Source of the DNA: Macrostomum lignano
Taxonomy: Eukaryota
Direction of reading: 5' to 3'
Assembly: GCA_002269645.1 (NCBI GenBank)
Contig: NIVC01002406.1
Location: 113,398 to 177,397 of the forward strand
DNA: 64,000 bases
This document shows positions 1-47,585 of this stretch, one piece after another. Within the stretch, counting starts at the first letter, position 1. Every line of letters begins with the position of its first letter. The position numbers were made by a program, and so were the translations under genes. Below the pieces are notes generated by a model that saw only the letters and a program-made list of their open reading frames with translations, did no database searches and was not told where the DNA came from.

Positions 1-3000
1 TCAAAGGCAAGATGATTCGACAAATAAAGAATGTTCATTTTTACCTTGAATAGAATTGTTCATTTTTACATTAAATATAATAAAATCTAACTAATAATAG
101 AAAAAGTCAGGGAACTATCCTTGAACACCAAAAAGCACATTGTGGATTTAATATCGACTGCATGTTCCTTAATAAAGGAATTCGGATACTATTCGGATAC
201 TAATTCGGATACTTCGGATACTCGGAAACTTGCTTGATTTTACTTTAAGTACTCATTACATTAATACTTATACCAAAGCTACATGTACTTAAAATAAAAA
301 ATTATAGTTACTTATTAGACATTTTACTCCAATTAACTTAAAATAATTCAAATTTATTTTAATTAATTCATTTTTTGAAACTTTTTGGAAAATAGACAAA
401 ATTGAATTATTTAATTAATTACCAAAAACCTACTAGCTTAACTAAAATAGCAATTAGTCTTTAAGAAAATATTTCACTTGTTAATTGAGAAAAATGAGGA
501 TGTGCGAGGTGTAAAAATGCGAAAGAGCATGCAGGAAACAGAGACAAACAAAAATGTAGGTAAAAGACACTGCACATGCACATAATATAATAACCAGACA
601 TGATGCGGACACTGAAACACCAGTAGCAATGACGCCCAAGCTTTTGATGATCACAAGCGAAAAGGCAAAACCCAGCCATCAATCAAAGAAGTAGACTATA
701 GCACGCATCTTGAGTGCATCACGCATTTTTTGCAGAGAAGCTCGAAAATTAACATTGTATTCTGTGCACAACCACCAACTGCGACAGGGTCTGCCGGGGG
801 ATTTGTGGGCACGCGGTCGCGGATACAAATCGGAGGAGTCGCTGACCATTCTGAAATTACAAGCTAGTACATGTAATTTTGTGTATTAATATATTTAGCC
901 CGCTTTATTTCTATGCTCTCGTCCGCCTCTCGTTAATGCATCCCCAGACTCATGCAATAATCAAACTTATGATCGAACTATGCATGGCTTCCGTCCCTCG
1001 CTTTGAATCTCTCACCTCCCCATAGTTCCATCAACCTTACCGTAGTGGCTTCCTATGCAAAAATCATCCCTCCGCATCTTACACAGGCTACTTCAGGCTG
1101 TAGACTGTACTACACTATTAATTAGTTGCGCTAAGGAATCTACATGTATTTGCTCGCAGCGCAGCGCGCTGCTCAAATAAGGTTAGATCCATCTAGATAT
1201 TCTAGTAATTTCAGGTTTGTCCATAGACTAGAGCTCATGAGATAAGAATTCCATTAACTAGTACATTTAATATGAATGAACTGCGTGTGTGTGCTGTACA
1301 TACATATGTATAATATACGAGTAGTTTATGGGCCAAATTATTGTGTGGCACAATTCTTGGCATCACTCAGCAGGCACAAGATGCAGTTAAGCAGCGCACG
1401 AAAATTCTACAAAAGAAATTGAGCCTGGTTGAGGTGATGCGAGGAGACAGATCCACACAATCTCAGTGAATACACCAGACTGCACCAGATACGAGTCCAG
1501 TCGAATGTGCGCACTGGTCTAAGCAGCACACGCATGTCCTCCTGACAATGACGGCACCTAGCTTCGTCCAAGCCTTTGCCAGCGTCACTGACAGCGTCAA
1601 TACTACCATGCAGTGCCACCTGCAGCACCGACAACGGCAATTCCTCCAGTTAGCCCACAACAGTGGCTAAACTGAGGGACAGGGAACCTACCCGCAGAAG
1701 ACACACACATACACACACAGCACCGGCAGCAGCACTCTGACAGCATACCTAAAGCTCCATGAGCTCAGTTTTCAAGCATTGAAGAAGCAGAAGCAGTCAT
1801 CTTGAATCCAGGGATCAGGAAGAGTGTTGCATGTCCGACATGTGCTGTTTCCGTGGCAAAAGGTGATGGAGCAAATTAATCAACACTTACTATCTAGCTC
1901 GTATTAAGACTAAAAAACTGAGGCAAGCTGGGATTAAACCAAGGAAAATTTTTTACTATACTTTTTTACCATATACTTTTACTATACTTTTATAGTATAG
2001 TAGAGAGGTACTCTATTTAAATGCAGTAAGAAGTGAAACAAATTTATATATTTAATTATTAAATTAAATTAATTCAAGGTAAATAACTAATTTAACCAAT
2101 TTATTAGGAGTATTTAATATTATAATAAATTGATTTTTATACCTTACACGAAATAAGCTCTACATTCATTTCTTAGCTTGGGGCCCATCTGTATAAGGTC
2201 AGTTTCTTCAAAATGCTGATTAATTAATTAAGGCCTGTTGTCTTTACTTAAATTTATAAGGGCATCTTAGAAGTTAATATTACTATATAATACATGTATA
2301 ATATTATTACTATATTACAATAATATAGTTGCAATTTTAATGACTATTGAATAAGTCTAAATGCTTCCCCTATTGACTTTAAATATATGGTATCTTTCCC
2401 TTCAGAAAAAATTAGCATAGAATGACTTGATGAAAACAAAAAAAATCATTTCGAGATACACATTTGTTGATCATTCAGGTCAAATTTCAAGGTCCAGTTT
2501 TGCACATGTTTCTCTGTAGCTTGGTTACAAGGATTCTAATAAAAATATAATAAATATGTCCAATGAACTAACTGATACATAGCCAAATTGAAGTATTTTC
2601 AAAAAAAAAATCATTTGCTCAGTTTACTTTACTGGATATCTGTGTAAAATTTCAGCTCAAAAGGTGCTCCATGGAGAATGCTAGTGTGGTTACAGGATAT
2701 TTATTTTGTGCTTCAAAGTAGGAGTTTATTGCAATGCATGGTTGCTTTTAATTATTTTTATCAACAATAGTGCTCTATTTCATAACAATTTTTTACAAAA
2801 AGATAATAAGACATGTTTTTCTAATTATCTGCATCAAAATGTATCATTTTAAGTGCACATTCTAGACGTCAGCTGAAAAATACATTTTGTGAGATAAGAA
2901 GAGGCTATCCCACCGGAAATGCTAGGCGTACAGTTAAGCGTCTATAAAATAATTTATAGTGCAGTTTATTAAGCTTTAAAAAAATCTTAAATTAAATTTA

Positions 3001-6000
3001 TATAAGCTTTCATTTTAAATGTAATATAGCAAGGTTTCAACACAACAACAACTTTTTTTAGCTACAGACATCTTGTAGTATCAAAAATTAACATCGGTGA
3101 AATGATTGAATTTGAATTTTTTCATCGCTAATTATCGTTTAATACCGCCAGATGATTAAAAACACTTTTGCATGATAAAGTTCAACCCAAAAATTATCTT
3201 TATTCACAGATAAAAGTGTCCTATTATTTTCAATATGGCAGTAACAATAGTAAATGTTCGGAAAATTGTTAAAATTTTTGCTCCTCCTAGAATTTGCGAA
3301 CGACCCTGGGAACTAAAACTGAAAAACCGGTCATCCCCCGCCCAGGATGGAATTCTTGTATTTCTTAAGTCAAACGGAATTATGCGATTTTTTTATGGTG
3401 CGCAAAATATTTTTTATTGGTCACATTTTTTATTTTGGTACTTAGCACGTGGCAAAATGGTAAAAACAAGTTTTTTAATGGCTTAGCTACTGCCTAATGA
3501 AAAATAACGAAAAATGCATTCTAAGAAAATGTAGTGATTTGAATTTTCGTCCAAATACGTATGTCAAGAGAATGTTACGAGTTTCTACTTTTTATAGAAT
3601 TTTGTGCCTTATTTAGTTTTTACTTTTTATTCTTTTTTTCTTCGTGATCTTAGCTAGTAGGATTATCTTTTGCAAAATTTAATATCTCAAGCGCACTTTT
3701 GCATATATTAAGAATTAGCAATTTTGTCTGAAATTCTGCGACGCATTTTTCCGGATTTTTTGACGCAAAATCGCATTTTTTCGCGCAATCTGGGTTTTTT
3801 TTTCGCCAGAGATAAGGTGCGAAATCGCACCTTGTGCCAAATTTCAAGGTGCGATTTTAAGGCTCAGAGTGCAATTTCTCTTGAGTCTTGTTTAGAATGT
3901 GGGGGTTTCACGAGAGATATTCAGACAGACATTCGAAACGATCGTCTGTAACTTTAAACAAAATTGACCCGCTTCAACCATCTTTTTGGCAAATACTTAC
4001 GCAAGTGTTGGGCGTCGAATAAGCTTTAATTTATTAACTGAAGTAAAAATCCTTCTGACATGCATTGATTTAAAAATTGCTTAGCAACACTAGCTCTGAT
4101 TAGAAATCGCTTTACTGTTGACTAAAATTGTTTTGATCGTAGCAGCCTAAAAGCAGATACTGGATTTAAAAATGCTTCGATTTACTCTATACGCATGTCT
4201 CAGCTTTAAAATGACACCTCAGGCGTCGCAAAAGACAGCTTTGATGCTGAGATATTCGACACTAAACATGCATTGCTTTGCGCAATCTCACATTCAGAAA
4301 TTTCACTGATTTTTTGTCGATATTTGTGCAGTTGCCATGTCCTTGTTTTTCATCAGAATCTTGTCAAATTCTAGTCATGTCTATACGCATGTCTCAGCTT
4401 TAAAATGACACCTCAGGCGTCGCAAAAGACAGCTTTGATGCTGAGATATTCGACACTAAACATGCATTGCTTTGCGCAATCTCACATTCAGAAATTTCAC
4501 TGATTTTTTGTCGATATTTGTGCAGTTGCCGTGTCCTTGTTTTTCATCAGAAACTTGTCAAATTCTAGTCATGTCCAGTTTAAACCTGGACTTCTCTTAA
4601 ACTGTCTTAAGTATTTGATTTTTAATGATTCCTGCCTTTATATTGCATAGATTGTACCTGAGTCAGTGAGTCTGTGAGTGTACATTTGTACATATGGCAA
4701 CCAATCATGACTTTTTCACCGCTTTGCGGTTCAAATAAATATACGAGTGTACGAGAAACATGTTCCAACTGTTATTGAGAGAAATTGACGTCGCGTTTAT
4801 TAACAGTCAGTGGCAATTAATATGAAGCAAATAGTTTATTGTTATGTTTTTACTTTTTTTTGCGTGGCAATTCTGCTATCCAAATCGGAATGAGGTAAGC
4901 GGTGGGAATAAAATAAAAAGGAAGAATTTTTTCTACTGTTGTTGCAACCCAATAGCTATATGTACTTCAAACTTTTTAGATTGAACAGGCGATTTCTAAT
5001 GTACTGCTAAGCTTTCCAATCCCTACGGACTACAGTAGCAGTTCTTAACTTTTTTTCTGTCTTGACTTCTAGACTCGGAATTCGGAACAACCTAAGGAGC
5101 CGCATGAAAATATTTAATTGGATAAAGATATTTTCTAAAAACAGCTCAAGTCGTGACACATCTTCTTCTCACCTCAGTCCATCAACTGCTGCTCCTTCTG
5201 AGACCAAAGCGATCGTGAAAGTAAAACAGATCAGTTTAGATCCCATGGCCATGAATACAACCATTTCAATTGTGAACCTGCTTCGCTTACTCGAGCACTA
5301 GCCTTCCATTTGATGCCATTAGCTCACTTAACTCTGAAATAGTTCAAGGACGGTTCCAAATGTTGAGATCTGACGTAGAAGCAGTCCAATTTGTGGAAAT
5401 TTATCAACTGGACTCCATGAATCACTCCAATGAAAGGCGGCGAATAGCTGCAGAATGCGTAAACAAGTTTAAGTGAGTCACAAAAACCCCATTTACTGTA
5501 ACTACATACACTTGTACGTTAGCAAGGCTCCATGCGATGGTTAATAAATGGAGAAGCAGACAAGCATCTGAACAAATATTGAATAAAAATCAGTGAAGTT
5601 TCCGAATGTGAGTTTCCCAGTGAAAAATGATTTATGGATTCCACGTGGGTTCCATGTGGCCATGTGGAATTTAAATGTTTCTTTTATTTTTGCAAATTAA
5701 TGAATTAAAGATTACATAATGGTATGCAAAGTATTTTTTATGCATTAATTTTCTATTTTTACTATCCTATTGTAGATGTGGATTTTACAAGGAATTCATT
5801 AGAAATACGCGTATATTGATTCAACATGGAATCCACTTCGATAAAAATACTGAGATATACTACATTCAGGTGTTTTTATAAAATTAATTTAATAAATTAT
5901 TATATTTATGTGATTTTAAGTAAAACTTAATAACTTTAAGCTAAATTATTATCGAAAAATTAGACACTGTTTGTTAAAATAGACAAAATAGAAGTGGACA

Positions 6001-6653
6001 GTAAAAAATGTTTCGTGCTTTTTAAAATTAAATTTATTTTATTTTTATTCGTCAATGTCTTGGTTGGTTCAAGGCCTTGAAAGATAAATTGCCTTGTTTA
6101 TGGCTATTTAAGCACCTTATAAATTTTAGTAGGCCTAACCTATAGGCAATAAGCCCCCTACTTATAAGGCCATGGTCTCCTCTAAGAAATCAGATAAATC
6201 AGTATTTTTTCCTAGATAGGCCTACTTTTGGTAAAATCCATGATAAAATTATTTATCCAATTTCTAGGAATCCCATGGCCATGCCCATAGTTTAGATACT
6301 CATTTTTAACTTCAATAGGCCTATAGAAGCTCATAATTTCCTCTTAGTCCTACCTACCTATCTGTTGGTCCCTGGACATTTCGGTGACAGGACGTTTCGG
6401 TGACAGCCTTTTCGGTGACAATTTAGGACGATTCGGTGAAAAATTTAGACGATTCGGTGACACGTTTTAAAAATGGAAGTTAATTTTGTCTGTAAGATAA
6501 TATAAACTCATGAACAAGACTTAATACTCAAAACTCGTCAGATTTTATTGCTTTGCGTTGATTTCGTAACTGACTTTGTTATATCTTTACACTTAAATAA
6601 AGGGTCATCTGCATTTCTAGATAAAGGTCAGTCGGCTGAGGCGACACGTCAAA

Positions 6654-6915
6654 GAGGCTTTTCATATTACCAATTCCAGAATCTGAATCGGTTCGGATCT
6701 TCCACGAAAAACAGCAGTATAACTATTTAATTCTGTTGAATGTTTGACTGCCTTAACAACCTCACTTAGCAAAATTTTTTACTTTCTTCTTGGCGATTGT
6801 CATTCAATAATAAAAACTTTATAGCACGTATCTCCCTCTAGTTATGGAGACAAAAAGTTATACTTTACAAATTGGTTTTGGTTCTGGAACCAGAACAAGC
6901 AATATGAAAAGGCCC
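6654..6915. mobile_element. Nest level 5: PIF/Harbinger-like MITE (262 bp), copy 1
   Basis: Imperfect TIRs gaggcttttcatat / atatgaaaaggccc and 3-bp TSD aaa/aaa. Closely similar to the copy at 29522-29783. Confidence 0.75.
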
Positions 6916-7249
6916 AAAGTCGCTTATTTTACACACTATAGCAGCATCATTTTTGCGACACTATCTGGATATATACCTGTGTTCAAGGCAATTCGTGTTA
7001 AAAATGTACATGTAGCCATGAGTCGCCTGGTCGATCTACTGTATTGATGCAAACAAAAGTTGTGGTTGTAGTTTGTTACTCTACTATCAGGGCTATGGAG
7101 AGGGGGCTGGGACATTCCATGCTTTATCCCCCTGCACCGCGACCCCACTTTAATTTGTTGACCTGTTATGATGGAAATCAATAATTTCTGCATGTTTTAC
7201 GGCGACAAAAAATAGCGCCTGCGGCACCAATTGAAATTGTGCCTGCGGC

Positions 7250-7372
7250 GCTGAAATAAGTGCAGCTACAGCGCTAAAATAAGTGCAGCTGCGGCGCTAA
7301 AATAAGTGCAGCTGCGGCGCTAAAATAAGTGCAGCTACAGCGCTAAAATAAGTGCAGCTGCGGCGCTAAAAT
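7250..7372. repeat. 24-bp minisatellite inside the MULE (gcgctaaaataagtgcagct-)
   Basis: About 5 tandem units visible directly. Confidence 0.85.
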
Positions 7373-8040
7373 AATCGCTGGCAACATCGATTCTAAAAAA
7401 AAATGTTGAAAATAATAATTGCTGACCATATTGACCAGGAAAGTCAAAGGAAAGACGGGGAAAGGACGACGTGAGGCCACATTAAGTTTTTAAATTGCAT
7501 AGTTTGCTTTTCAGAACTTGCTTTAAACGTTTGTTGCTATGCTACGTAAATAGGCAATTCCAGTATTTAATCTTTCGTCATTGTTAGATGGTTGATTAGC
7601 ACCTTTGATGGTTCAGTGTTGCAAAACAGTAAAGCTCGTTAAGTGAACCAATTGGGCTTAGTGGATCGAATTTTGATATCTACATGTACGAGTATTTAAT
7701 TACTAACAATGCTAATTCTGGAATGCCAAGCACCAATGATTTGGTTACGCGATAATTGCTACCATGCTAAAGCAAAATCATTGCTAGCAGAGAAGCATTG
7801 CTCGTACGGTGATATAATGTTTGTTTTTGACACGACACGACATTAGGGTTAGCAAAGCAGAACAACGGATTGCGTATGAAATATGAATGCGGATGAATTT
7901 ATAAAGACTCGTGGTATCTGAGGCGCCAATACGACTATATAACTTCTAGCAAACTCGAGCGATAGTTCTTCGAATTCTAGACGCATGCATATTCACAGCT
8001 CTGCTGGTTCTTACCTTTAATCAGTCAAAATAGTTATTTC

Positions 8041-11000
8041 ATGGACGATTACTGCCCAAAATGCAGCCATGCTGTTAGCGGCCGCCAACATGCACTTAAC
8101 TGTGATAGATGCAAGTTTTGGTATCATCGACTCTGTTTAACAGGTAAGATTCTAAACTTCGCTATTTTGCCCAACTTTTTCGTGTTTAACAGAAAAAAGG
8201 TATTCCATCATAAATTCTACATGTAACTTCGCCGAATTTCACTTTCCCATAATTTCATTTGCTCGTAATATCACTCCCAATTGCATCTCAAAGCAATTGC
8301 ATACACGGATGCGTGTAGCCAGTAAGTACATGTACGCTCGTAGCTACAGTCCATGCCACGCCTTTTTGTTATCATTTTAGGGCGCGCCAGCATCTCTATG
8401 GCTAAATATCGTGAGTTACAACGCCGCAGCTCCTTTAACTGGTGCTGCCCAAACTGCAGTTTAGCGGGCAATGAAGCTGCAGCGGATGAGGAAAGTGAGC
8501 AGGTTGCTACAGCCAGCGAATCTGAGGATGAGGCTGCAGCGGATGAGGAAAGTGAGCAGGTTGCTACAGCCAGCGAATCTGAGGATGAAGCTGCAGCGGA
8601 TGAGGAAAGTGAGCAGGTTGCTACAGCCAGCGAATCTGAGGATGAAGCTGCAGCGGATGAGGAAAGTGAGCAGGTTGCTACAGCCAGCGAATCTGAGGAT
8701 GAAGCTGCAGCGGATGAGGAAAGTGAGCAGGTTGCTACAGCCAGCGAATCTGAGGATGAAGCTGCAGCGGATGAGGAAAGTGAGCAGGTTGCTACAGCCA
8801 GCGAATCTGAGGATGAAGCTGCAGCGGATGAGGAGGTTGTAGCTGATGATGGCGGGATGATTCACGATCTCTATGAATCAGTTAGTGACCCAGAACCCAG
8901 GCCAATAGTTGAGCGAGGTCAAGAGTTAGAGACTTTTGAAGTCATGCAAGACGGAGGCAGCCGAGGGAACGTTCTTGTAATATCGTCGAATGGGTACTCC
9001 TATGGCCTTCATCGTCGGCGTGGTGCTCGTGAATATTATCGTTGCACTCAGCGCAGTCGTCATACCCCTTGTTGTGCTACTCTAATTCGCAGTGCCGGTG
9101 AAGAGTTCAAGCATGGGAAAAGCGGGCACAGCCATGCACCAACCCTTGGTGCTTCTGCTACTCGAAAGATTTATCGAGACGTAAAAGTTGCTGCCTCAAC
9201 GGATGTCTTTAAGTCTGCGGCACAGCTTACAGATGATAGACTACTGCGCGAACTCACTTCCTCCACGGCAGCGAACTTGCCGAATCCAACAAATCTAATT
9301 AGAGCTGCAAACCGGTTTCGCGAAAGAGGACGGCCAGAGGAGCCTAAGGATTTAAACTTCCAACTGCAGTTGGAAGCCTTGCCCAATGGATTTCTCAGAA
9401 GTGATGTCCAGGTTGGAGGAAGACGACACTTAGTATTTGCTACTAATCATCAATTGACACTACTGAGTAGTGCCCACGAGTTGTTCATGGACGGTACGTT
9501 TTCAATTGTCCGACGGCCATTTGTGCAACTTTACTCGATTCATGGCTTTTTCCGTGCTGAAGGACATCTGAAACAGGTGAGCATGCAATAGGTCAATATT
9601 ACGATCGTACTAAGCTCTAATATACGGAATTCGAATCCCTGGAACTATATTTCTGTATGAATCCTAATGAATCACACAACATCACGTCTTCTCTTCACTC
9701 TTCTCTCTTGTCTCTGTTCTCTTTTCGCCTCTTTCATCTCTCCCCTCTCTTCCCTCTCCCTCTCTCCCTCTCTTCCCTCTCTCCCTCTCTCCCCTCTCTC
9801 CCTCTCTCTCCACTCTCTCCCCTTTCTCCCCCCTCTTTCCTCTCTTCTCTCTCTCTACCTTTCTCCCCTCTCTTCCCTCTCCCTCTCTCCCTCTCTTCCC
9901 TCTCTCCCTCTCTCCCCTCTTTCCTCTCTCTTCTCTCCCTTCTCTCCCCTTTCTTCTTCTCTCCCCTCTCTCCCTTTTCTTCTTCTCTCCCCTCTCTCCC
10001 TTTTCTCCCCTCTCTCTCCTCCCCTCTCACCTTTCTCCCCTCTCTCTCCTCCCCTCTCACCTTTCTCCCCTCTCTCCCCTCTTTCCTCTCTCTTCTCTCC
10101 CTCTCTCCCTTCTCTCCTCTCTTCTTCTCTTCCCTCTCTCCCCTCTCTCCCTCTCTCCCCTCTCTCCCTCTCTCCCCTCTTTCCTCTCTCTCTTTTCTCC
10201 CCTCTCTCCCGCCCTCTCCTCTTGCTTCTCTCTTCTCTCTATAAGGGAAAGAGAGACAGGCGGATGTTGTACATGATTGCATGCTATATACATGTGTATG
10301 TACTGTATCCATGTATTGCAATTACCGCCGTTTTAAACTAATGGCAGGTCCCATTAGCGTTTGTCCTAATGTCTGGAAGAAAAAAGCGCGACTACAAGGC
10401 AATCCTGCGTGAAATTCGGAGACTAGTTCCTAACATGGATCCGAAGAGTTTTGTCCTGGATTTCGAGCACTCTGTGTGGAAGGCGATCCGGAGGGTCTTC
10501 CCAAATGCTAGTGTTCGTGGCTGCAATTTTCACTGGACTCAAGCAGTTTGGCGCAAAGTCCAGAACATAGGACTTCAACAGTCCTATCAAGAAGATGAAG
10601 GCACGCAAAAGTTCGTCCGGAAAATTATGGCCCTGCCTTATTTGCCCGCGGACACTATTGTGGCAGCCTTTGACGAGCTTCGGACAGAAAATGCCGTTGA
10701 AGCTGACGAACGTCTAGTTGAGCTCTGCAATTACGTTAGCGGCACCTGGCTAACGGAGGGCCATCAATGGACTCCAGGAGACATTTCTGTATTTGGCCAG
10801 CCAATACGAACCAACAACGACTTAGAAGGCTGGCACTACCGCCTTAATCGCAAAGCGGGACGACGGAACCTGCACTTCTACCTGCTGGTACAACTTATTT
10901 ATGATGAGGCTGCCTTAGTACCTCTTCAATCTAATCTGCTGTCTAGAGGTATGCTTTCTCGTGAACAGCGGAAGACGTATAGAACTGTTCAGTCCCGTCT

Positions 11001-11088
11001 GTTCCGATATTGGGCAGAGTTCGATTCTGGCAACCGAACGGTACGACAGCTTCTTCGAGCCTGTGGTCGGCTGTGTAATCCGAAGTGA
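8041..11088 (+). CDS. PHD-FLYWCH-MULE transposase, 3 exons, predicted 679 aa
   Basis: Exons 8041-8143, 8381-9576 and 10348-11088 join in frame at GT-AG sites. PHD: CPKC..CDRC..WYHRLC..WCCPNC. FLYWCH-like: YYRC...C...HSH. MULE motifs: FMDGTF, VLDFE, GCNFH, RTNNDLEGWH. No internal stops. Confidence 0.9.
8473..8833 (+). repeat. 57-bp coding tandem repeat (EAAADEESEQVATASESED x6)
   Basis: Six near-identical units in frame within transposase exon 2. Confidence 0.95.
9680..10240. repeat. CT-rich polypyrimidine low-complexity tract in transposase intron 2
   Basis: Almost exclusively c/t; produces spurious S/L/P and R/E/G ORFs. Confidence 0.95.
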
Positions 11089-14064
11089 TCGAACCCTCTC
11101 AGGACAACGGCCTGCAGCATGTGCTGGATGACGGCCACAGGCACAGAGAGGAATCTGTTGGACGGCCGCCTGTGCTAATGCAATAGCTATCTCTCTGTTA
11201 TAGCGCGAACTTAGAAAAGTTGTTTACTACATGTATAACGATCTTTCAATTCACTCAATCATGTATTGTTAATCATTTCGAATAGGATTTTTCTTCCATG
11301 CTATAGTTTTATCGCCAATTGACAATTATTTTACTTTCAGCTTTTCGTTGTAAATTTTCTAAGACCATTAATTCATGGCAATTTTTCTGTTGTAAATATA
11401 AAACCCATTATTAAAATCCACTAATCACAAATCGCTATGCCATGCATATTTTTCATGTTTTAATATTCGATATTTGTGGAAATTGAGTCGCAATACTAAT
11501 AAATGCTCTAAATATTAAATAAATTATGTTATTTTCTTCCTTAAGCTTGAATATAAGTGTACTATACATGTATGACAGTACAAATGTCTGATCTTACGCA
11601 ACAATCAACCATGCAACCATGCAATATGCACTGTAGCTACTTATATTCATATGAATGTGAACAATAATTAACTAACAATAACTGTTAAAATATACTCGTA
11701 AAAATGTTATGCTTTTTGACATAAATTTGCTCGACTTTGCAAAAATCAATAGGCCAGGGTAGGCCTATTGCCAAAATTCTTACTTTCATAAAATAAATTT
11801 AAGTGTTATAAATTTAAGTGTAGTGATATAACAAAGCCAGTTACGAAATCAACGCAAAGCAATAAAACCTGACGAGTTTTGAGTATTAAGTCTTGTTCAT
11901 GAGTTTATTATCTTACAGACAAAATTAACTTCCATTTTTAAAACGTGTCACCGAATCGTCTAAATTTTTCACCGAATCGTCCTAAATTGTCACCGAAAAG
12001 GCTGTCACCGAAACGTCCTGTCACCGAAATGTCCAGGGACCCTATCTGTTTATATGTATGCTTATTAGGCCTATTTTAAGCCGTAACTATCAAGTTATAT
12101 ATCTTTCTATTTTAATTAAGGTTAGGACTAGCTTGACTTTGTGAATTGAGTAGTCAATCTAGCTATTCAGTTAAATCTATTAAATAATGATTTTCTGCAA
12201 GAAAGCCTGTTAGCATCTTTTGGACTTGTTGCATTTTTAAAAACAATGTTATAGATCTAATAAATAGGCCTAAATTCTTTGCAATTATACTTGCAACTTG
12301 CTTTTGGCATAACTAGCCTAGTAGCTAAGGTTATTATGAATAAATAATGATTATTGTAAATTTGATCAGATATAGGGCTAGGCCAAGTCTAGAATTTAAT
12401 AGCCATGGGGCATAATGCCTATTTAGACTTAGGCCTCATGTTTTATCATACTAGCAAATAAATGGAACTTGCATTGTTTTGCCTAAAAACTATATGGTCT
12501 AGAACCAATTTTAAAATAAAAAAATTAAATCTAAAAACATATATAATAATAATTTCTATACTCATTATTTTATTGGTATTTCTATTTATTGACTTAGGCC
12601 TTGTTACTTTTGAAATAGTCTTTATTAAGTATTCATCCTTAAAAGTATACTAATATAATCTATCAATCTTAATTGGCAACAACTATTTTTTGTTTCATTT
12701 ATGCCTAACATCACGTGGCTTATCCTGAAACTTGGGTGTCACCTTGGTCTTGCCTTTGAAGAAGCATGCAAAGCTACTTGGAATTTGAATTTAATATCCA
12801 GAATGCTACCTTTTGTGAAGCTGTGGTAAGTTTTAGTTACAAACTGATTTTTTTCTGTCATCAAAATGTACATTTATCTGTTATCCACAGATACTAATAA
12901 AATTCTGTAATTTAACTCATTTCTTTTCTAAGGTTTCTCACCTGACCTGAAGAAGCAGCATTCTGGCGATTGGCAGCAGCTTGTTTCTGAGTGTTCTAAT
13001 TCTGGTGCATTATAATATTTTTAATTAATGCTATTGACAATGTCAGTTTCAAATTATATATTGTATCATATGCGCAACTCTTAAAGGTATCAATATCTAC
13101 ATCAGTGTGTTTATTCTTTGTGTGCCAGTGACTTACTACTGTACATAAATACACCTTACTTATTGAGACATCCTTTTTGAATATATTTTTGTGCAGAAAT
13201 ATTTTTTGGCTTTAGTGTTTTTATCTGTGTTTCAGTTTTTTATATGGTATTGAGATCTGGGGTGTGTATGAAATTTTGAGATCTGGTATTATTTTGAGAT
13301 TTAAGATGCAATAATTTATTAGGGCAACCAGTATAATGGCTGCTACTCAATGACAATGTGGATTCTATGTGAAATACATAATTACTTCCATGTGGATCTT
13401 CCATGTGGAATCCATATCTTGATTCCACATGGATGGACAGAGACAAATGAACATATGGATTTCATATGAAAAATCCACATGGAATCCATATCATTTTTTT
13501 CACTGGGTTGAGCAAAGCAATGTTTAGTGTCGAATATCTCAGCATCAAAGCTGTCTTTTGCAATGCCTGAGGTGTCATTTTAAAGCTGAGACATGCGTAT
13601 AGACATGACTAGAATTTGACAAGATTCTGATGAAAAACAAGGACATGGCAACTGCACAAATATCGACAAAAAATCAGTGAAATTTCTGAATGTGAGATTG
13701 CGCAAAGCAATGCATGTTTAGTGTCGAATATCTCAGCATCAAAGCTGTCTTTTGCGACGCCTGAAGTGTCATTTTAAAGCTGAGACATGCATATAGAGTA
13801 AATCGAAGCATTTTTAAATCCAGTATCTGCTTTTAGGCTGCTACGATCAAAACAATTTTAGTCAACAGTAAAGCAATTTCTAATCAGAGCTAGTGTTGCT
13901 AAGCAATTTTTAAATCAATGCATGTCAGAAGGATTTTTACTTCAGTTAATAAATTAAAGCTTATTCGACGCCCAACACTTGCGTAAGTATTTGCCAAAAA
14001 GATGGTTGAAGTGGGTCAATTTTGTTTGAAGTTACAGACAATCATTTTGAATGTCTGTCTGAAT

Positions 14065-17000
14065 GGGTCTCCCTAAAACACGCCCCGGGGTGTGTATAAA
14101 AGCTGGCACTGGCACATTGGACACATTGGACACCCCTTTTTATAACAAAATTAGATATGAAAATGCAGAATAAACTTGCGGAGTTACTTTAAATAATTTT
14201 TAAAAAATGATAATATTAGAAATGACATCCTTGCTTTCGTGATAGATGATTTGTTAAATATTCTTTGTATTATCGTTTTTTGTACATGTTTAATTTGGCA
14301 TTCGATTTTTTAAAATAATCGCACATGTATGCAAAAACTGCAGCTTGCAATGCTATTACACTGTGATTTTACTACCCGAAGGTTCTGTACTACAGGCGTA
14401 CCGATTTAATGCTAAATATGCCTGATATATAAAATGATCAAACTAATAGTCAGAACTCAATTTTCCATAAAATGATGAAGCATTCTGCTCTTATCAAAAA
14501 ACCACAACTTATTTTGTTAGGATTACTTCATGAAGAACGAACTTTGGATATTCCAAGTTGCAAGTATTTCTATATTAAAAAAGTTAATACATTGGCAGAT
14601 TATTTGATGAAAAAATTGCACCCAAAAAGTTTTTTTTTACTTTGTAAGATGATGATTAAATTGATAATTTCCAAGCTTCTTCTTTTATTATTTCAATTAC
14701 TTTTTCTATGATTTCAACCAACAAAAAAGGAATAGCTACTCAGTGAAAGTTCAAATTACAGTCTCTTCTTTATATACAATCCTTGTAAGAAAACCTTTTA
14801 TTATGAATAATTTGCCAAGTCATGATATTTAAGAAATTGTGCTAATCATTTAAATTATGAGTTAAAAAATTCAAGCATTTAAGTAAAAAATCTACCTTAC
14901 AGACCAAGAAGTCTTTTTACTGAAAAGTTATGTGACACTTTGAATAAACAACATATAAACCATCTTCACATAACATTTATTGTCATTTATTTCAGGCCTA
15001 AATCCTTTAGCACATAAATATTCTGCACGTATGTTGCAGGGTATACTTCCTTCTTCTAAAATCCTACAAATGCCACAAAGTTTTAATAGGCAGATTTATT
15101 AGTATTGTTTATATTAATATTTCTATATTTATGAGAAGTGTCCCAATAAGAACAAGTTCCCAATCAGTAAAACACTATTTTTTAATTCTAATGTCCAAAA
15201 TTATGGCATTCTAAGGGACCAAGTGATAGGTTTTAAGCTACTATTAGCACCTGCATGATTTATTTATTTAATACCTACACATTCCTTAATGTCTATAGTT
15301 CGCCTAATTGCCTAATTGCTAACCCTAATTCTAGCCTTCTTGGCTTACAATTTTGCGTCTTCACAGCACATTATTCAATTCAAGCCCTACTAATTTTATT
15401 AATTTTATTAGCCTCTCTTAATTTTATAAAATAATAATTTTCTTTAGTGTAACTGCTCCAAAAATTTAAGTGGTGTGCCGAAACACCACTTGCACCATTA
15501 CAGCCCTGTCTATAATTTTTTTGTGCTAATTGGTTGACCACTTTCAATAATTTTCTTGGGTCAAGAGTGTGATATATGCATATTGCAGCATGAATTTTTT
15601 AAAGAATCCCTAATTTTATACAAGGAATCATACATATTTATAGAAAGTTAGCTCTTAGAGTAGAGATAAAGTACATAAGACTATTAATAGCAACTTTTCA
15701 TACAATTGCTTATGGTAATGACTTCTATTGTTATAAAGTTACAAATAAATAAAAAGTTACATTGCATTAAAACTGTACTTTATGAGTTGTAAGCCTTTCA
15801 ACTCAGAGTGCACTTCAATTGCTTTAATATACATTGCTAGATATTATTTAGCATTTCTTTGTTATTTATCATTTAACTCATTGCATTATTTAATTGCTAA
15901 TTTCATTTGCTCAGCTGCAATATTTATAACTTTTTTATTAATGCCAATGTTTGTTATACTTTTTCTCCCCATTTTTAGTGTTTGTGGTATTCTTTTGTCA
16001 AATTTTAATTTTTCAGCTGTATCTATCTTTACAAAAAATTGTACCTGTAAACTTATGGTTTTTTGCTTACAATGGTACTGTACTAAATTATATTTATTTC
16101 CTTGTTAGATTCTCTAAATTGAAAAAGTAATGCACTGCTTTATTATTATCCATATTGAATATTAAGGAGTTAGTATTCCTTCCTTGAAAAAGATTCTAGA
16201 GTTGGATTCTATTTGATAAGAGAATAAATAATTTATTGAGTTTTAATGTTTTTAAAACATTAATTAATTGCATTTTGATGGACACCATAACTTAAAAAAT
16301 TATTCATTTTTTTATTTAAGACACGGGGGATTTTAAAAGTCCATATTAACAACAAATCAAACATTAACATTATGGGAGAGAGAGAGAGAGAGAAGGATTA
16401 GATTCACTTTCACCATTGCTGTTGATTTATGGAAAGGCAGTAAACAAGCCAGAGCAGCTGCAAATTGTCAAATATGCCATGTCCGGCTATAAAATTCTGC
16501 AACTAGTCTGCTGCTCACTTTTTCCAACGTTTATTGAGAACAAGAAACGGCATTTAATGTTTCTATGTTTTCTGTAAGTGCACCAACTAGGTAAATGAAA
16601 ATGACGTACCGAAAGTAGTTCGACAATAAAGCAAGATAAGAAATGAATTTAAATGTAGAATAAAACTTGTTGATACTACCAATCTCATGGTTGTTAAAAG
16701 TATATAAAAAAGTGCAATTATAAATAAATATTTACATTTTCATTCGAAAGCCAAAGTAGATTTATTTAAGCAAAACAACGATCAAAACTCGATTTTTGTT
16801 AACATAAGGGGTGTCCAATGTGCCAATGGTGCCCTGCTTTTATACAGACCCACACGCCCCGCACTGCCCTGCAGCGCTACACATTAAAACAAATTGGACT
16901 ATAACTAAAGACACTTCAGAATGCGTTTTCTGTTAAGCTTCAAGTTTTTATTAAATTTAGTTTTTTTACTTTGAAATATAAAATTCGGTGAACAATAAGT

Positions 17001-17192
17001 GATATTAATAATAATATTATAATTTAATAATGAAAACGAGAATATAAAAAATAATAATATTTAAAAAAATAAATAAAGATATTTATTCCATTACTATTTT
17101 AACTTTTCCTTGCAATCAAATACTGCATTGACAAAAATGTTATAATGTGTAGCAGTTCGGGGCCCGGTGCGGGGCGTGTTTTAGGGAGCCTT
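14065..17192. mobile_element. Nest level 3b: Mutator-type MITE (~354 bp net)
   Basis: TIR core ctccctaaaacacgccccgcac...gctacacatta is restored once the inner insert is removed. 9-bp TSD tgtctgaat (14056-14064, 17193-17201). The outermost bases are mismatched (gggt vs aagg). Confidence 0.8.
14088..16851. mobile_element. Nest level 4b: non-autonomous Mutator-type element (2764 bp) inserted in the left TIR of level 3b
   Basis: ~55-bp TIRs gggt(g/c)tgtataaaagc...ggcacattggacacccct. 10-bp TSD acacgccccg (14078-14087, 16852-16861). No transposase ORF seen. Confidence 0.85.
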
Positions 17193-18745
17193 TGTCTGAA
17201 TATCTCTCGTGAAACCCTCACATTGCTCACATTTCAGACAACTGGGAATGTATATTTTAATATCTTACATAAGGCTATAGCTATAGGCTATATCGCCTAT
17301 ATGACTTAGTAGGATTTAAAGAGTTATTTTGTTTCATATTTTAAGGCAGTGCATAAAAAATAGCTTAAGCATGGTTAAGCCTTTAAAGAAAAATGGTTAT
17401 AAGACCGCACCTAAACCGCACCTACTTTTTTAATTTCAGGGTGCGATTTTAAAATTTAGGGTGCATACGCACACTCTGCGCACAAAAAAAAACCCTGCGC
17501 GCAATCGCATAACGCGTTGTGATTTTTCTGCAAGAATTCCATCCAGGTCGGGCCCCGCTGCTCAACGTCAATCTCGTCAATCTCGTCCACGTTTGTTGAT
17601 CATATTAATAAATAAATATTTAGTCTGTAAGCTGAGATAAAGTTATTCAATATTTTAATCAAGTTTTGTCTATCGTCTATGATTGAAAGGGACTAAGACA
17701 AGTAATTATTTTCTGAAATTTTATATGCTTGAAACTGAAACTACTATATAGTCATATTAAATATAGCATGCATGATGCTGCATAGGCCTAATCATTGATG
17801 TATAGATTTGATGCGATTCGAATTGCCCCCCTATCTGCTATTTATAGGCCTAATTTAAGCCTGAGTTTTATTTTGTAGGTATAGATTGATTAAGTTCAAG
17901 GCATACTTTTAAATTTAGTATTGCAATGGATATTCAAGCAATGCAAAACAGACTTATATGTCTAGGCTTAGTCTAAAATAGATTGATAGGCCTATAGTAG
18001 TAAGGCTCATCTTCCACAAATAAAGTGTCAAATGATTTGATTTGTATTACTTTAGCTACACTACAGTACAGTACAGGGTAGGCCCTGGCCTAGGCCTAGC
18101 TGAAATAAGAAATTTGATAAATTATAAGGCTTAGGCCTATCACAATTAGAAATATTACATTTTATTTTAAGCCTTTTTGACTTAAGCATAGGCCTTGGTC
18201 TTGGGCCTACAAATAGTTAAAAGCTACATAGTTATACATTACATAGGTCTATATCTATATTTTAGTCCAATTCATATTCTAGTATTAACCTAGCTAAGAT
18301 AAAAGAAAACTAAGATAAGATAAAAGGGTCAAGCCAGTCTTTAAAATACAACAAATATTTTCATTTTAAGCAAACTTAGATTAAACATATAAAAGAAAAT
18401 GCAAAATTTACATTCTTAGCAATTATTTATATTAATCTAATGTTATTTATTGTTAATTTTAAAACAGCAAAAAGTTTATCATTAACTTTCTAGACTAAGC
18501 CTATACAATTTTTCCATTACTTCACTTAAAAGTTAATTTACATTACAATTTTTATGCACAGCACAGCATATATTTATTCATCAAAATTAGTAGGCCCTAT
18601 GCCAAAAAATTGGCATCAATTTGTGCATCAAAATTTGTAGACCTATGCCTACAAAAATTGCATGAATTTGTATGCCAACTTTGAAAGGGGTCATTTGTGT
18701 GCTAGAAATTTTTTGGCATATATATGACCTTCTGGAGTCTGGCAC

Positions 18746-19043
18746 CATACATGCGCTACAGTCGGCCGAGTTGGCCGATCTGGCCAACTAATTTGGCGGC
18801 CAACCAAGGTAAGTCGCAAAAAGGCTTACCCCAAAGAATACACACGTAGTTCTAATTAGATAATGTGGTATTTAGCCCTTATAAGACAGTCATAGTTACT
18901 CTTGCCATTTACCCAAAATTGTATTAATTTTGCTTTAGGGTTTCTTTCATAGGTAAGTTGCATTTTTGGCCTAAAACTATTTCGCATTTTTTGTTAAAAC
19001 TAAGTCGCATGGCTGACCAAATTTTGGAAGTTGCACATATATA
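18746..19043 (+). mobile_element. hAT MITE family catacatgcgc, copy 1 (older)
   Basis: Homologous to 22235-22525. TSD tctggcac/tctggtac (1 mismatch); right TIR is decayed. Confidence 0.8.
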
Positions 19044-21889: not shown

Positions 21890-23135
21890 AGGATTGCTTG
21901 CAGGAAAATAGCTTGTCAAAGTTTGCTTGCAGGAAGATTGCTTATCAAAGTTTGCTTGTCAAAGTATCTTCATGCCAAAATTTGCTAGTATGAAGTTAGT
22001 TTGCTTGCTTGCAAAAGATTGCTTGCAGGAAGTTTGCTCACCAAAAGATACTTATAGAAGTTTATTAGCCATACTTTTGTGCTATTTTGCTTGACAAAGT
22101 TTGCATTATTATTCAATTGTAAAGATAACTATATGGAGTTACAACAGCATAATCATAATCCTCAACTATGATTATAAGTGTATTTAACTGCAAATTACTT
22201 AACTGACCACATCAAATTTTTTTTCTGTTATGCACATACATGCGCAACAGTCGGCCGAGTCGGCCGATCCGGCCGACTGATTTGGCAGCCAACCAAGGAA
22301 GTCGCAAAAATGCCCACCCAAAAAAATACCCCCGTAGTAGTACTAAGTAGCTGACGAGGCATTTTTGCCTGATAAGACAGTCATAGTTACTAGTCCCAAA
22401 GTTGCGTTAATTTTGCTTTGGGGTTTTTTTTACATGTAAGTCGCATTTTTGGCCAAAAACTACGTCGCATTTTTGTTAAAACTAAGTCGCACGGCCGACC
22501 GAATTTTGGACGTTGCGCATGTATGGTTATGCAATACTTTTAAATTGCTTAGTGCAATTTAAGTAACATAAGCATAACAAATGCACATGAAAAGTTAAAA
22601 GCTACATGAAGTAGAAATAAAAAAAATATAATGAATAGTTTTTGAAAATCATATTATACTTCTAATTAACATTTTAGTACATTTCTAAGAGGTTGAAATA
22701 ACCTAAGTATTTAAAAATGATTTGAATATTTTGTCTACTTTAATATACTATTGTGGCAAAGTCATAAGCTAATAAAATATGGAAAAGTATAGTGTTACTC
22801 AAAGTGAATATAATTAAAATGCTGCTGTAAACTAAAATTGTGTGTCCTAAATTGTGTGTTGCAAATATCCTGCAAGCAAAATTTGGCAAGCAAAGTACAA
22901 TAAGCAATTGTCATGCAGGCACATTTTGGCAAGCAAAGTATAGTAAGCAATCGTCATGCAGGCACATTTTGGCAAGCAAATTTTAGCCAGCAGATTTTAG
23001 CAAGCAATGTTTAGCAAGCAGACTTCAGCAAGCCAACTTTGGCAAGCAAAATTTGTCAACCAAACTTCAACAAGCTCAGTAAGCAAATTGTTGCAAGCAA
23101 ACTTTAATAAACAAACTTTGGCAAGCAAAATTTGT
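21890..23135. repeat. Inverted clusters of ttgcttg / caagcaa short repeats, possibly a degenerate TIR element
   Basis: tttgcttg motifs at ~21890-22105 and complementary caagcaaa motifs at ~22870-23130. Ends and TSD not resolved. Confidence 0.4.
22235..22525 (+). mobile_element. hAT MITE family catacatgcgc, copy 2
   Basis: 14-bp TIR catacatgcgcaac/gttgcgcatgtatg. Perfect 8-bp TSD gttatgca (22227-22234, 22526-22533). Confidence 0.9.
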
Positions 23136-24018
23136 ACTCCCATCAGGAGATTATCCCAAATGTGGCTAGGCCTTAATTAATAATAATATAAATAAGCTAC
23201 AATATATAACAAGGTTCTTATTAAAATAGACATATAAGACTATTATATGTTTGTATATTAAAGAATCATTGTACTACATGATCAAACTTATTCTTAGTCC
23301 TTAAAATCATATTTTTATATAAATTTAACAAAGTTAGCCTTATTTTCTAAACAAAATTTATTCTAGTTGCTTTCAACTTTCCTTGCTATCAAAAGAAAGA
23401 TTTATAATCAAAGATCATATATAAATTTATTCTGTTTTACTATTTAATATCTATATATTTTACTTAAGATAAAATCCTTACTATATTAAAAATGTAAAAA
23501 AATATAGCTTGAGTTTTTTGCTAGAGCAATGATGCAAAATTGCATGTAAGGTCTAAAAAGATTGAAAGATATAGTTTTAAAAGATAGATGCGATAGCATA
23601 TTTATTGCACAAAATTTAGGTGTTGCTATATATCTAAATTAGAGTTAAATTGTATAATAAGACAATTAAGGGGGTGCAGTGCCCAAATTGGTATATTTAT
23701 AAAATAGTAACTTAAGTAAAGTGAGTATAAAACGGGTAGAATATGCAACTAAAGAAAGAGGTAGGATTGAAGAGCCAACTAGATGGCAAAAAGATAGATA
23801 ATGATAACAAGATTAAACTAGACAAAGAGAGAAAACAGAATAAATTAAGACAAATTAAGTTTAACTAAAGAAATGACTAAGTTGCAATAATCACTATCTA
23901 TTGAGTGCTATCCAAAGGGTATTTTATCCTAGAAGCTAGAGGTACCATAACAAGGATACTATTTTTATCCAAGGGATACTGTCCTAAAAAGACTATTCTA
24001 GGGTATTTTTCCATTCTA

Positions 24019-24707
24019 CCTATACTAAATCTCTAAGGTTTGTTTGTTTGTCTGTCTGTAACGCTCTAGAGATCGCAATTCTTGACCGATTTTGATCGCG
24101 TTTTCGCCAAAAGATTCAAAATTGTCTGGAAAGAAGACAGTTAAAATTTCTTTAATCTGCTTCAATGCTAAAGGGATTAAATATTCGAAAAACGGTTTTA
24201 AATGGGCAAATTCAATGTATTTTTTATCAAACTGCTCGCAGCGATAGAATTCACAGCCAATTTTAATGATTGTGCCAGAGTAACTGATCAGAAAGCTCAT
24301 ACATGTGCAACCTCCAAAATTCGGTCAGCTGTGCGACTTAGTTTTAACAAAAATGCGACGTAGTTTTTGGCCAAAAATGCGACTTACATATAACAAAACC
24401 CGAAAGCAAAATTAACGCAACTTTGGGTAAACGGCAGGAGTAACTATAACTGTTTTATTAAGCTAAAATGCCTCATCAGCTACTTAGTACTACTACTTTT
24501 GTTTTGTTTTTTTTGGGTGGGCATTTTTGCGACTTCCTTGGTTGGCCGCCAAATCGGTCGGCCGGATTGGCCGACTCCGCCAACTGTTGCGCATGTATGA
24601 GAAAACTCACTGGGCCCCACTGGCGAGATAACAAACTCTATTTAAATTTCGCAACCATTAAATGGGTGAATATAAAAAGTACTCTCGATGCTGGCAGACA
24701 GCTCTAG
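24019..24707 (+). mobile_element. Non-autonomous Helitron-like element, interrupted by hAT MITE copy 3 and followed by a partial tandem copy (~24712-24860)
   Basis: 5' tatactaa..gtttgtttgtttgtctgtctgt..ccgattttgatc layout; 3' gctg..cagc hairpin followed by CTAG|T. About 150 bp recur in direct orientation just downstream. Confidence 0.5.
24298..24599 (-). mobile_element. hAT MITE family catacatgcgc, copy 3 (reverse orientation)
   Basis: Reverse-complement homology to copy 2. TSD agaaagct/agaaaact (1 mismatch). Confidence 0.85.
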
Positions 24708-26439: not shown

Positions 26440-27380
26440 ACCATCAATTAAAGACTTGCTAAGATATCTAAGCTCATCGGGGAATAGCTGAGTTGTCAAG
26501 GCTTATAAGGGGATTGCTGAGTTATCAAGGCTTATAAGGGGATTGCTGAATTCTTGGGAGAGGGGAGTTGGGTTGTTGGGATGTCATGGCTAATTACTGC
26601 AGTGGGAGAATTGCATAGATGTCGAGGCTGGAGTTTAATTGCTGCGATGTCGAGGCTTAATGTGGTTATTCCTGAGATGTCAAGGCTTACTGGGGAATTG
26701 CTGAGATCTCAAGACTTACTGGGGGAATTGCTGATATGCCAAGGCTAACTGGGGAAATTACTGAGATGTCAAGGCTTACTGGGGGAATTGCTGAGATGTC
26801 AAGGCTTACTGGGGGAATTGCTGAGATGTTAAGGCTTACTGGGGAAATGCTGAGATCTCAAGACTTACTGGGAAAAGTTTTGAGATCTCAGAGCTTACGG
26901 GGGAAATTGCTAACATCTCAAGGCTTACTGGGGGAATTACTAAGATGTCAAGGCTTACTGGGGGAATTACTGGGATGTCAAGGCTTACTGGGGGAATTGC
27001 TGATATGTCAAGTCTAACTGGGGGAATTACTGAGATGTCAAGGCTTACTGGGGGAATTGCTGAGATGTCAAGGCTTACTGGGGGAATTGCTGAGATCTAA
27101 AGGCTTACTTGGATCTCGAGGCTTACTGGGGAAATGCTGAGATCTCAAGACTTACTGGGAGAATTTTTGAGATCTCAGAGCTTACGGGGGGAAATGATGA
27201 GATCTCAAGGCTTACTGGGGGAATTGCTGATATGTCAAGGCTAACTTGGGGAATTGCTGAGATGTCAAGGCTTACTGGGGGAATTGCTGAGATCTAAAGG
27301 CTTACTGGGATCTCAAGGCTTACTGGGGGAATTTCTGAGATCTCAAGGCTTACTGGGGGAATTGCTGGGATGTCAAGGCT
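26440..27380. repeat. 30-bp minisatellite (gctgagatgtcaaggcttactgggggaatt)
   Basis: Roughly 25-30 units, well conserved from ~26670 and degenerate at the left end. Confidence 0.95.
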
Positions 27381-29108: not shown

Positions 29109-29168
<60 letters not shown>

Positions 29169-29177
29169 TCTCCTCTC

Positions 29178-32309: not shown

Positions 32310-32604
32310 TCATATTGTTAACTTTCATAGACACTGGTACTGACTTGCCAAGAAATTGATTATGTCATAACTGATTCATGTGACTTTTTACTCTACCTGA
32401 CTTGGTGTGAGTGTTGAATTATATAAGTAGTACAAATTCACTGATAACTTCAATGAGAGCTAGCCTAGAGCTGAACAGACCAGACTGCTAATGCAGCAAC
32501 CTGGGTTTGAATCTAAGTAGTTTAAAAGTAGTACTGTAAAATTTTTTATTAAAAGCTTTTAATAAAGGACTAAATAAAAACACTTAGATTACTGCACTGT
32601 ATAA

Positions 32605-47571: not shown

Positions 47572-47585
47572 TCTTATTGTTCCAG

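Follow-up and report, generated by a model that had tools for sequence, protein, structure and literature searches.

The intergenic retrotransposon nests of maize and the nests of MITEs (miniature inverted-repeat transposable elements) in rice are the classic cases of transposons inserted into one another, and that the order of nesting can serve as a relative chronology is textbook knowledge from plant genomes. In such clusters, including those of nested MITEs and Mutator-like elements (MULEs) in rice and maize, successive insertions carry their own target site duplications (TSDs), excision of an insert restores its host, and the order of nesting gives relative age. Nested MULEs and MITEs have been described in plants (PMC3903597). 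Here we describe a stack with the same properties in the flatworm Macrostomum lignano. It occupies positions 3337-17552 of a 64,000-nucleotide stretch of contig NIVC01002406.1 (assembly GCA_002269645.1, positions 113,398 to 177,397 of the forward strand); this whole stretch, the one assembled 64-kb sequence on which the analysis is based, is called the window below. We conclude that the region very probably formed through serial insertion of cut-and-paste DNA transposons, one inside another. The classic plant nests are built of long terminal repeat retrotransposons, whereas this stack consists of DNA transposons only, is five or six levels deep, lies in a flatworm genome, and contains an apparently intact MULE with PHD and FLYWCH domains. 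It is a clean new instance of a well-known phenomenon, with neither a new kind of element nor a new mechanism, and it changes nothing in the known mechanism of transposition.

Composition of the stack

Inverted-repeat searches and self-BLAST revealed strictly nested pairs of termini. These define eight inverted-repeat elements, which form a main chain of six (L1, L2, L3, L4, L5 and L6, each inside the preceding one) and a side branch in which L3 also hosts S1 and S1 in turn hosts S2. To set the boundaries, we aligned each left end with the reverse-complemented right end of the same element and looked for terminal repeats accompanied by a TSD. The coordinates, with TIR standing for terminal inverted repeat, are as follows.

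3337-17552: L1, the outermost CCCG...CGGG element, in the parts 3337-3789 and 17506-17552
3337-3358 and 17531-17552: TIRs of L1, with CC flanks at 3335-3336 and 17553-17554
3790-17497: L2, a hAT-like MITE of 379 bp when reconstructed, in the parts 3790-3895 and 17225-17497
3782-3789 and 17498-17505: exact 8-bp TSD of L2, CGCGCAAT
3896-17224: L3, a long-TIR element of ~2.3 kb, in the parts 3896-5615, 13510-14064 and 17202-17224
3896-5615: left part of L3, made up of an arm (3896-4575) that contains 194-bp tandem subrepeats, an interior (4576-5563) and, at 5564-5615, the section of the right arm that lies furthest inward
13510-14064: main part of the right arm of L3, 98% complementary to 3919-4471
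17202-17224: outermost 23 bp of the right arm of L3, separated from the remainder by S1
5616-13507: L4, a CCCAG...CTGGG element of 2.2 kb, in the parts 5616-6366 and 12051-13507
5614-5615 and 13508-13509: TT flanks of L4
6367-12041, plus strand: L5, an autonomous Mutator-like element of 5.7 kb, with TIRs at 6367-6598 and 11812-12041
6358-6366 and 12042-12050: exact 9-bp TSD of L5, CTATCTGTT
8041-11088, plus strand: transposase gene of L5, exons 8041-8143, 8381-9576 and 10348-11088, 679 amino acids (aa), spliced frame open
6654-6914: L6, the innermost MITE, 261 bp, 56 bp inside the left TIR of L5
6650-6653(4) and 6915-6918(9): direct repeat CAAA(G) flanking L6
29522-29782: second copy of L6, outside the stack, which fixes the boundaries of L6
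14065-17192: S1, a Mutator-like MITE of 354 bp when reconstructed, in the parts 14065-14087 (23 bp) and 16862-17192
14056-14064 and 17193-17201: exact 9-bp TSD of S1, TGTCTGAAT
14088-16851: S2, a non-coding Mutator-type element of 2764 bp
14078-14087 and 16852-16861: exact 10-bp TSD of S2, ACACGCCCCG

The eight elements sum to 14,178 bp and, together with 38 bp of TSD copies, account for the entire interval of 14,216 bp exactly, with a residue of zero. The reconstructed L1 measures exactly 500 bp, which confirms the claim of an earlier note on this DNA that an element of ~500 bp had grown to 14.2 kb. That note had also proposed a comparison of the region with itself, in which the nested terminus pairs were recovered by self-BLAST, and had listed TSDs for the hAT MITE (8 bp), the MULE (9 bp), the Mutator MITE (9 bp) and the second Mutator-type element (10 bp), all of which are exact. 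The nesting is real. The boundaries, the TSDs, the restored junctions described below and the intact transposase of L5 can be read directly from the sequence. Coding capacity is confined to L5, the remaining seven elements being non-coding.

The ends of the elements differ in length and precision. In the 22-nt TIR of L1 (CCCGCCCAGGATGGAATTCTTG), 20 positions match, and a weaker similarity continues to ~53 bp. The left TIR of L2 is CTGGGTTTTTTT, the right one CAGGGTTTTTTT (combined form C[T/A]GGGTTTTTTT...), and GGTGCGA motifs are present in both of its subterminal regions. The arms of L3 extend over ~650 bp, and the 32-nt inverted repeat formed by its two tips (3896-3927 and 17193-17224) has 31 matches. 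L4 terminates in an exact 12-nt repeat, CCCAGTGAAAAA, which has no other occurrence in the window, and CCAYRTGGA subterminal motifs are found at the two ends of L4 only. S2 has GGGTGTGTATAAAAGC as its left TIR and GGGTCTGTATAAAAGC as its right.

For comparison, the region was shuffled block-wise 20 times. A shuffle contained, on average, about 2.7 inverted repeats of at least 13 nt accompanied by a TSD of at least 3 bp. An inverted repeat with a TSD of at least 8 bp was found in none of the 20 shuffles as against four in the real stack (L2, L5, S1 and S2), and a 22-nt inverted repeat with at least 20 matches in one of the 20, whereas the unshuffled sequence has 12 distinct diagonals of this kind. 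In fuzzy searches with each terminus, every terminal sequence found only its cognate pair in the 64-kb window. A sensitive blastn search (word size 7) with the eight reconstructed elements detected no diverged copies elsewhere in the window except the second copy of L6, and an exact-pattern scan of metagenome contigs for the L6 terminus gave 0 matches. Two extensions of the stack were considered and rejected: a seventh, outer level, as no inverted similarity was found between 1-3336 and 17553-40000, and further small nested elements, as the counts of inverted repeats with TSDs equal the shuffle background except for S2.

Restoration of the host sequences

In each of the four nestings for which we compared the host across the junction (S2 in S1, S1 in L3, L4 in L3, and L2 in L1), in-silico removal of the insert restored the inverted-repeat alignment of the host. 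Removing S2 with one TSD copy extends the terminal inverted similarity of S1 from 23 to ~52 bp across the junction. When S1 with one TSD copy and L4 with one TT are taken out, the right arm of L3 becomes collinear with the left arm over ~650 bp, and the rebuilt arm is gapless at both the S1 and the L4 junction. The latter falls inside a 194-bp subrepeat of L3 that has paralogous copies; the gapless junction within this subrepeat shows that the duplication made by L4 is exactly 2 bp. After removal of L2, the terminal similarity of L1 continues up to the junction. The proposal that removing each insert restores its host thus stands for these four inserts. L5, inside L4, is secure because of the 232-bp TIR and the exact 9-bp TSD, and L6 is secure because a second copy exists.

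L5, a Mutator-like element with an intact transposase

The TIRs of L5 are 232 bp long and 97.4% identical, and their outer 136 bp are 100% identical. Each TIR contains five TTCGGTGA motifs, which are probably binding sites. The spliced product matches the Pfam MULE domain PF10551 (E = 5.9e-11, 43.1 bits, cut-off 27.6) and FLYWCH, PF04500 (E = 8.5e-06, 26.3 bits, cut-off 23.6); an N-terminal PHD-type finger is weak (18.6 bits, under the cut-off of 24). The protein shares 38-43% identity with six animal MULE proteins, to which it is collinear, and it retains the conserved acidic and CxxH/RTNND.EGWH positions. Full-length homologues that align end to end occur in cnidarians, crustaceans, molluscs and amphioxus. 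At both splice junctions conserved residues are rebuilt, such as K-Q-V-P-L across intron 2. The exons are 100% identical to the Macrostomum lignano protein P0001, which has an equal number of 19-aa repeats; an exact-protein look-up of P0001 and two open reading frames (ORFs) of the window found no entry among public records. The 19-aa repeats, acidic and located in the N-terminal part of the transposase, are encoded by an in-frame 57-bp tandem repeat at 8471-8834 (6.4 copies, 99% identical).

Published MULEs have TSDs of 8-11 bp, TIRs that are often hundreds of bp long and, in animal groups, FLYWCH or PHD fingers (PMC6446971). L5 has a MULE (DDE) domain, a TSD within this range, long TIRs and a zinc-finger DNA-binding domain. 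Judged by these features, L5 is an intact autonomous MULE. The copy looks young and is possibly active, since the outer 136 bp of its TIRs are identical and its ORF is intact. We compared it with the animal Mutator-like groups Phantom, Rehavkus and Muta1 of Aedes (PMC6446971, PMC5225508), which it resembles in its 9-bp TSD, its 232-bp TIRs, its single ORF with MULE, FLYWCH and PHD-type domains, and its minisatellites; the likeness is one of published features rather than of reference sequences and does not fix the clade. However, the minisatellite of L5 is in frame in the N-terminal part of the ORF, whereas that of Rehavkus lies just before the 3' TIR. An intact-looking L5 could matter for genome instability or for transgenesis tools in M. 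lignano; for Muta1, excision has been assayed in yeast.

Two further repeats were noted in L5. A 23-bp tandem repeat (7243-7374, 5.7 copies) occupies the 5' non-coding region upstream of the transposase start, and a CT-rich microsatellite (9685-10240) lies in intron 2. The latter has 72-75% mutual identity with CT-rich arrays at 28473-29177 and 30286-31002, which flank the second copy of L6; the likeness is probably low-complexity convergence.

Classification of the non-autonomous elements

L1-L4, L6, S1 and S2 were classed by their termini and TSD length only, as non-autonomous elements are classed in Repbase (PMC4455052). Among ORFs of at least 55 aa outside L5 no Pfam match was credible; one to Pox_G7 (E = 0.007) scored 15.8 bits, below the threshold of 27, and was taken as chance.

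L2 appears hAT-like on account of its 8-bp TSD, exact and of the length typical of hAT elements, and its CAGGG terminus. The terminal form of hAT elements is YARNG, with which the right end of L2, beginning CAGGG, agrees. With hAT-type MITEs L2 also shares the short TIR and the repeated subterminal motifs; however, its left terminus, CTGGG, is one mismatch away from the expected form, and L2 has neither a transposase nor a link to an autonomous hAT element. S1 and S2 are Mutator-like in their GGGT termini and in their TSDs of 9 and 10 bp, which fall in the 8-11 bp range of Mutator elements. On direct reading, the starts of S1 (GGGTCTCCCTA) and S2 (GGGTGTGTATA) do not match that of L5 (GGTCCCTGGAC), the sole autonomous MULE compared, and under the Repbase rule for shared MULE termini (positions 1-11, at most one mismatch; PMC4455052) neither shares its termini with L5.

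CCC termini, 2-bp TSDs and ATGGAAT-type motifs are common to L1 and L4, and the two may belong to one superfamily. The 2-bp duplication is clear for L4 (TT, with gapless restoration of the host). TSDs of 2 bp are known from the CMC (EnSpm/Mirage/Chapaev)/Transib clade and from ISL2EU/Harbinger relatives (PMC12730594). The 5'-CA...TG-3' termini typical of the CMCT clade are absent from both L1 (CCCG...CGGG) and L4 (CCCAG...CTGGG). A palindromic octamer, TAGGCCTA, occurs 12 times where 0.9 occurrences are expected (6130-6323, 11760, 12066-12272 and 17783-18139): it clusters in the interior of L4 to either side of the MULE, and there is one occurrence in the 3' subterminal part of the MULE and five in the host DNA just to the right of the stack. 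L4 and the right flank of the stack have no alignable homology.

L6 resembles the PIF/Harbinger (Tourist-like) MITEs in its small size (261 bp) and its TIR core GGC(C)TTTTCATAT, a GGCC-type start. However, the canonical TSD of PIF/Harbinger elements is 3 bp, typically TWA (PMC2213677, PMC12730594), whereas L6 is flanked by 4-5 bp. The second copy, to which L6 is 95.4% identical, has CATT on both flanks. Homology between the two copies begins right after CAAA and CATT, respectively, and these four bases recur after the right end in each copy; because the homology starts after four flanking bases, the duplication is 4 bp, or 5 bp if one mismatch is allowed. A TSD of 3 or 2 bp would require a further coincidence in each of the two copies, and TWA fits neither CAA nor CAT. 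The 3-bp TSD and the label of a Harbinger-like MITE that L6 had been given are therefore unsupported.

The terminal sequences and TSDs point to three types among the elements (hAT-like, Mutator-like, and CCC termini with a 2-bp TSD), while L3 and L6 are unclassified. The earlier claim of at least four superfamilies in the stack is unsupported.

Order of insertion and alternative explanations

In the history that we propose, L1, a non-autonomous element of 500 bp, would have inserted into AT-rich intergenic DNA ~21 kb upstream of a BET bromodomain gene and would then have been interrupted by the hAT-like MITE L2. L2 carries, or may have received, the 2.3-kb long-TIR element L3, whose right arm was presumably entered twice, by L4 and by S1. 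The 2.2-kb L4 would later have taken in the 5.7-kb L5 carrying the 261-bp L6, and the 354-bp S1 the 2.8-kb S2. The insertions would have duplicated 8 bp of target (L2), 2 bp (L4), 9 bp (L5), 4-5 bp (L6), 9 bp (S1) and 10 bp (S2). The stack would have no function of its own and could persist because insertions into dead transposon DNA in a gene-poor region are harmless, with each insertion enlarging the target for later ones.

For these copies, the nesting gives a valid sequence of insertions: L1, L2, L3, L4, L5 and L6, with S1 and then S2 after L3. It proves neither that all events occurred at this locus nor much about the periods in which the families were active. The relative chronology put forward in the earlier note therefore holds for the insertions into these copies; for family activity, genome-wide copies are needed. 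The arms of L3 are 98% identical and the outer TIRs of L5 100%, which suggests that everything from L3 inward accumulated quickly, although TIR identity is no proper clock. We rejected TIR divergence as a clock since TIRs need not be identical at insertion.

Three points weigh against this reconstruction. The evidence comes from a single assembled window; the CC flanks of L1 sit in a run of C and are weak, taken alone, as a 2-bp TSD; and the boundary between L2 and L3 rests on the inverted repeat, L3 having no second copy in the window and no TSD. No duplication of any length was found at or near the ends of the L3 repeat when the boundaries were shifted by a few bp and one mismatch was allowed. 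Furthermore, the ORFs of L3 have no family match, and L3 lacks coding capacity. These features would fit a reading of L2 and L3 as one non-autonomous hAT-type element whose interior holds a long inverted duplication, or of L3 as an inverted segmental duplication rather than a transposon; in both cases the stack would be five levels deep. We consider this unlikely. The L3 repeat stops abruptly at 3896 and 17224, and the parts of L2 outside it (106 bp and 273 bp) have no mutual inverted similarity beyond the termini of L2 itself. In addition, an unrelated long-TIR element at 22234-24600 indicates that such an architecture moves, or at any rate recurs, within this genome. Because of the abrupt ends, the non-inverted surroundings and this second long-TIR element, it is plausible that L3 is independent of L2. 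Of the six-level stack that had been reported, the nesting and its coordinates stand, and the depth is six or five depending on whether L3 is independent.

The assembly itself could be at fault, through chimeric joining or collapse of repeats, and assemblies of M. lignano are reported to be difficult due to repeats and a recent genome duplication (PMC5730564); the species is described as a hidden tetraploid of recent origin (PMC5704211, PMC10733133). However, mis-joins do not yield exact TSDs of 8-10 bp or gapless restoration of the host across four junctions, and as each family is single in the window there is no local repeat to mis-join; we regard an artefact as very improbable. A more serious alternative is that fewer events took place here, the inner elements having arrived inside their hosts as composites (L6 in L5, S2 in S1, or L4 to L6 in L3). 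We infer, rather than observe, that every event occurred at this locus, and it is unproven because L6 in L5 and S2 in S1 could have travelled inside their hosts. Riding inside a host is most plausible for L6 in L5, as L6 lies in non-coding DNA 56 bp inside the TIR and leaves the transposase intact, so that L5 and L6 together could still transpose; the 4.6% difference between L6 and its other copy, set against L5 outer TIRs identical over 136 bp, is likewise compatible with an older MITE in a recently moved MULE. Of the other hosts, S1 has its left TIR split by S2 at 23 bp from the end, and L3 has its right arm disrupted by both S1 and L4; later mobilisation of these hosts would probably have been impaired. 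Taken over all the composites, this alternative is doubtful, though it deserves some weight, and the number of insertion events at this locus is about four to seven. Serial insertion of one transposon into another is the reading that we prefer.

Two observations touch L3. The second long-TIR element (22234-24600, ~2.4 kb) has arms of ~300 bp with 93-95% identity and the termini CATACATGCGCAACAG, and a solo third arm of this element, 81-91% identical, is found 3.2 kb upstream at 18746-19042. Exactly at the right boundary of L3 with L2 (17217-17234), CTCACATT occurs twice in tandem with a single G between the copies; at a junction that lacks a TSD this could be a footprint or the result of replication slippage.

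Probable clustering of the insertions

If insertions were uniform and random over the genome, the share of the genome at nesting depth d would be Poisson-distributed, with -ln(1-f) as the mean and f denoting the transposon fraction; we derived this model and checked it by simulation. For M. lignano, 3.05% of the 764-Mb assembly is annotated as DNA transposons and 10.05% as other unclassified repeats (PMC5730564, supplement), and counting in all of the "other repeats" gives an upper value for f of 13%. At f = 0.03 the model gives ~1e-6 depth-6 elements per genome and at f = 0.13 it gives 0.004-0.03; about one is expected only at an effective f of at least 0.3. Since uniform insertion predicts fewer than 0.03 such stacks per genome, clustering is likely, that is, a concentration of insertions in part of the genome, whether through target preference or through survival. 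The calculation is post hoc, the window having been picked as unusual. The cause of the clustering is a matter of inference: the suggestion of a hotspot or safe haven gains quantitative support as far as clustering goes, and the two causes are inseparable here. The depth of nesting against a low load of DNA transposons is a hint of a strong concentration of insertions in DNA that is AT-rich and poor in genes.

A more far-reaching interpretation is that the stack is an insertion trap and not a chance pile-up, either a locus or chromatin domain favoured by several superfamilies or a transposon aggregate producing PIWI-interacting RNAs (piRNAs), and that L1 and L4 perhaps represent a lineage undescribed in flatworms. 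In M. lignano, 436 piRNA clusters with a median of 9.7 kb make up 0.63% of the genome (PMC4604429). We give this interpretation little credence.

The stack places at least five transposon families in order in a flatworm that serves as a model of regeneration and whose DNA transposons are poorly catalogued, with ~3% annotated and unclassified repeats discarded. It should help in curating the repeats of M. lignano and might also aid the discovery of an endogenous transposon that is active.

Genomic setting and other repeats

The stack lies in a repeat-rich block of ~30% GC (1-38 kb) that also holds satellites and other TIR elements; genes lie beyond it. The BET bromodomain gene extends over ~39-44 kb, with exons at 39057-40244 and 42660-43688 that encode two bromodomains and an ET domain. 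The best matches of its ORF are in Schistosoma and other flatworms at ~41% identity, and no near-identical M. lignano protein was present in the database searched, although the MULE protein has a 100% match there. Taken by themselves, the protein matches would point to M. lignano or a very close relative as the source, and the database may lack the BET protein. About 600 bp upstream of this ORF, near a possible promoter region, lies a compact palindromic MITE-like element (38117-38461) whose 91-nt arms are 96% complementary and 163 nt apart. Further along the window are an ORF for a PHD-like zinc finger (47-48.6 kb) and a kinase (62-63 kb). An ORF at 52898-53575, in the GC-richest part of the window, encodes a partial reverse transcriptase (RVT_1, E = 3.8e-10) and is a retroelement fragment. 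No structured RNAs or tRNAs were found anywhere in the window.

Four satellite arrays were noted outside the stack. One has a 30-bp unit (26637-27380) and another a 48-bp unit in 23.7 copies (32587-33722). A third, with 40 copies of a 14-bp unit (47008-47572), overlaps the 5' end of the PHD-like ORF (47103-48626, zf-HC5HC2H). The fourth (59905-60378) consists of 7 copies of a 68-bp unit that are 97% identical.

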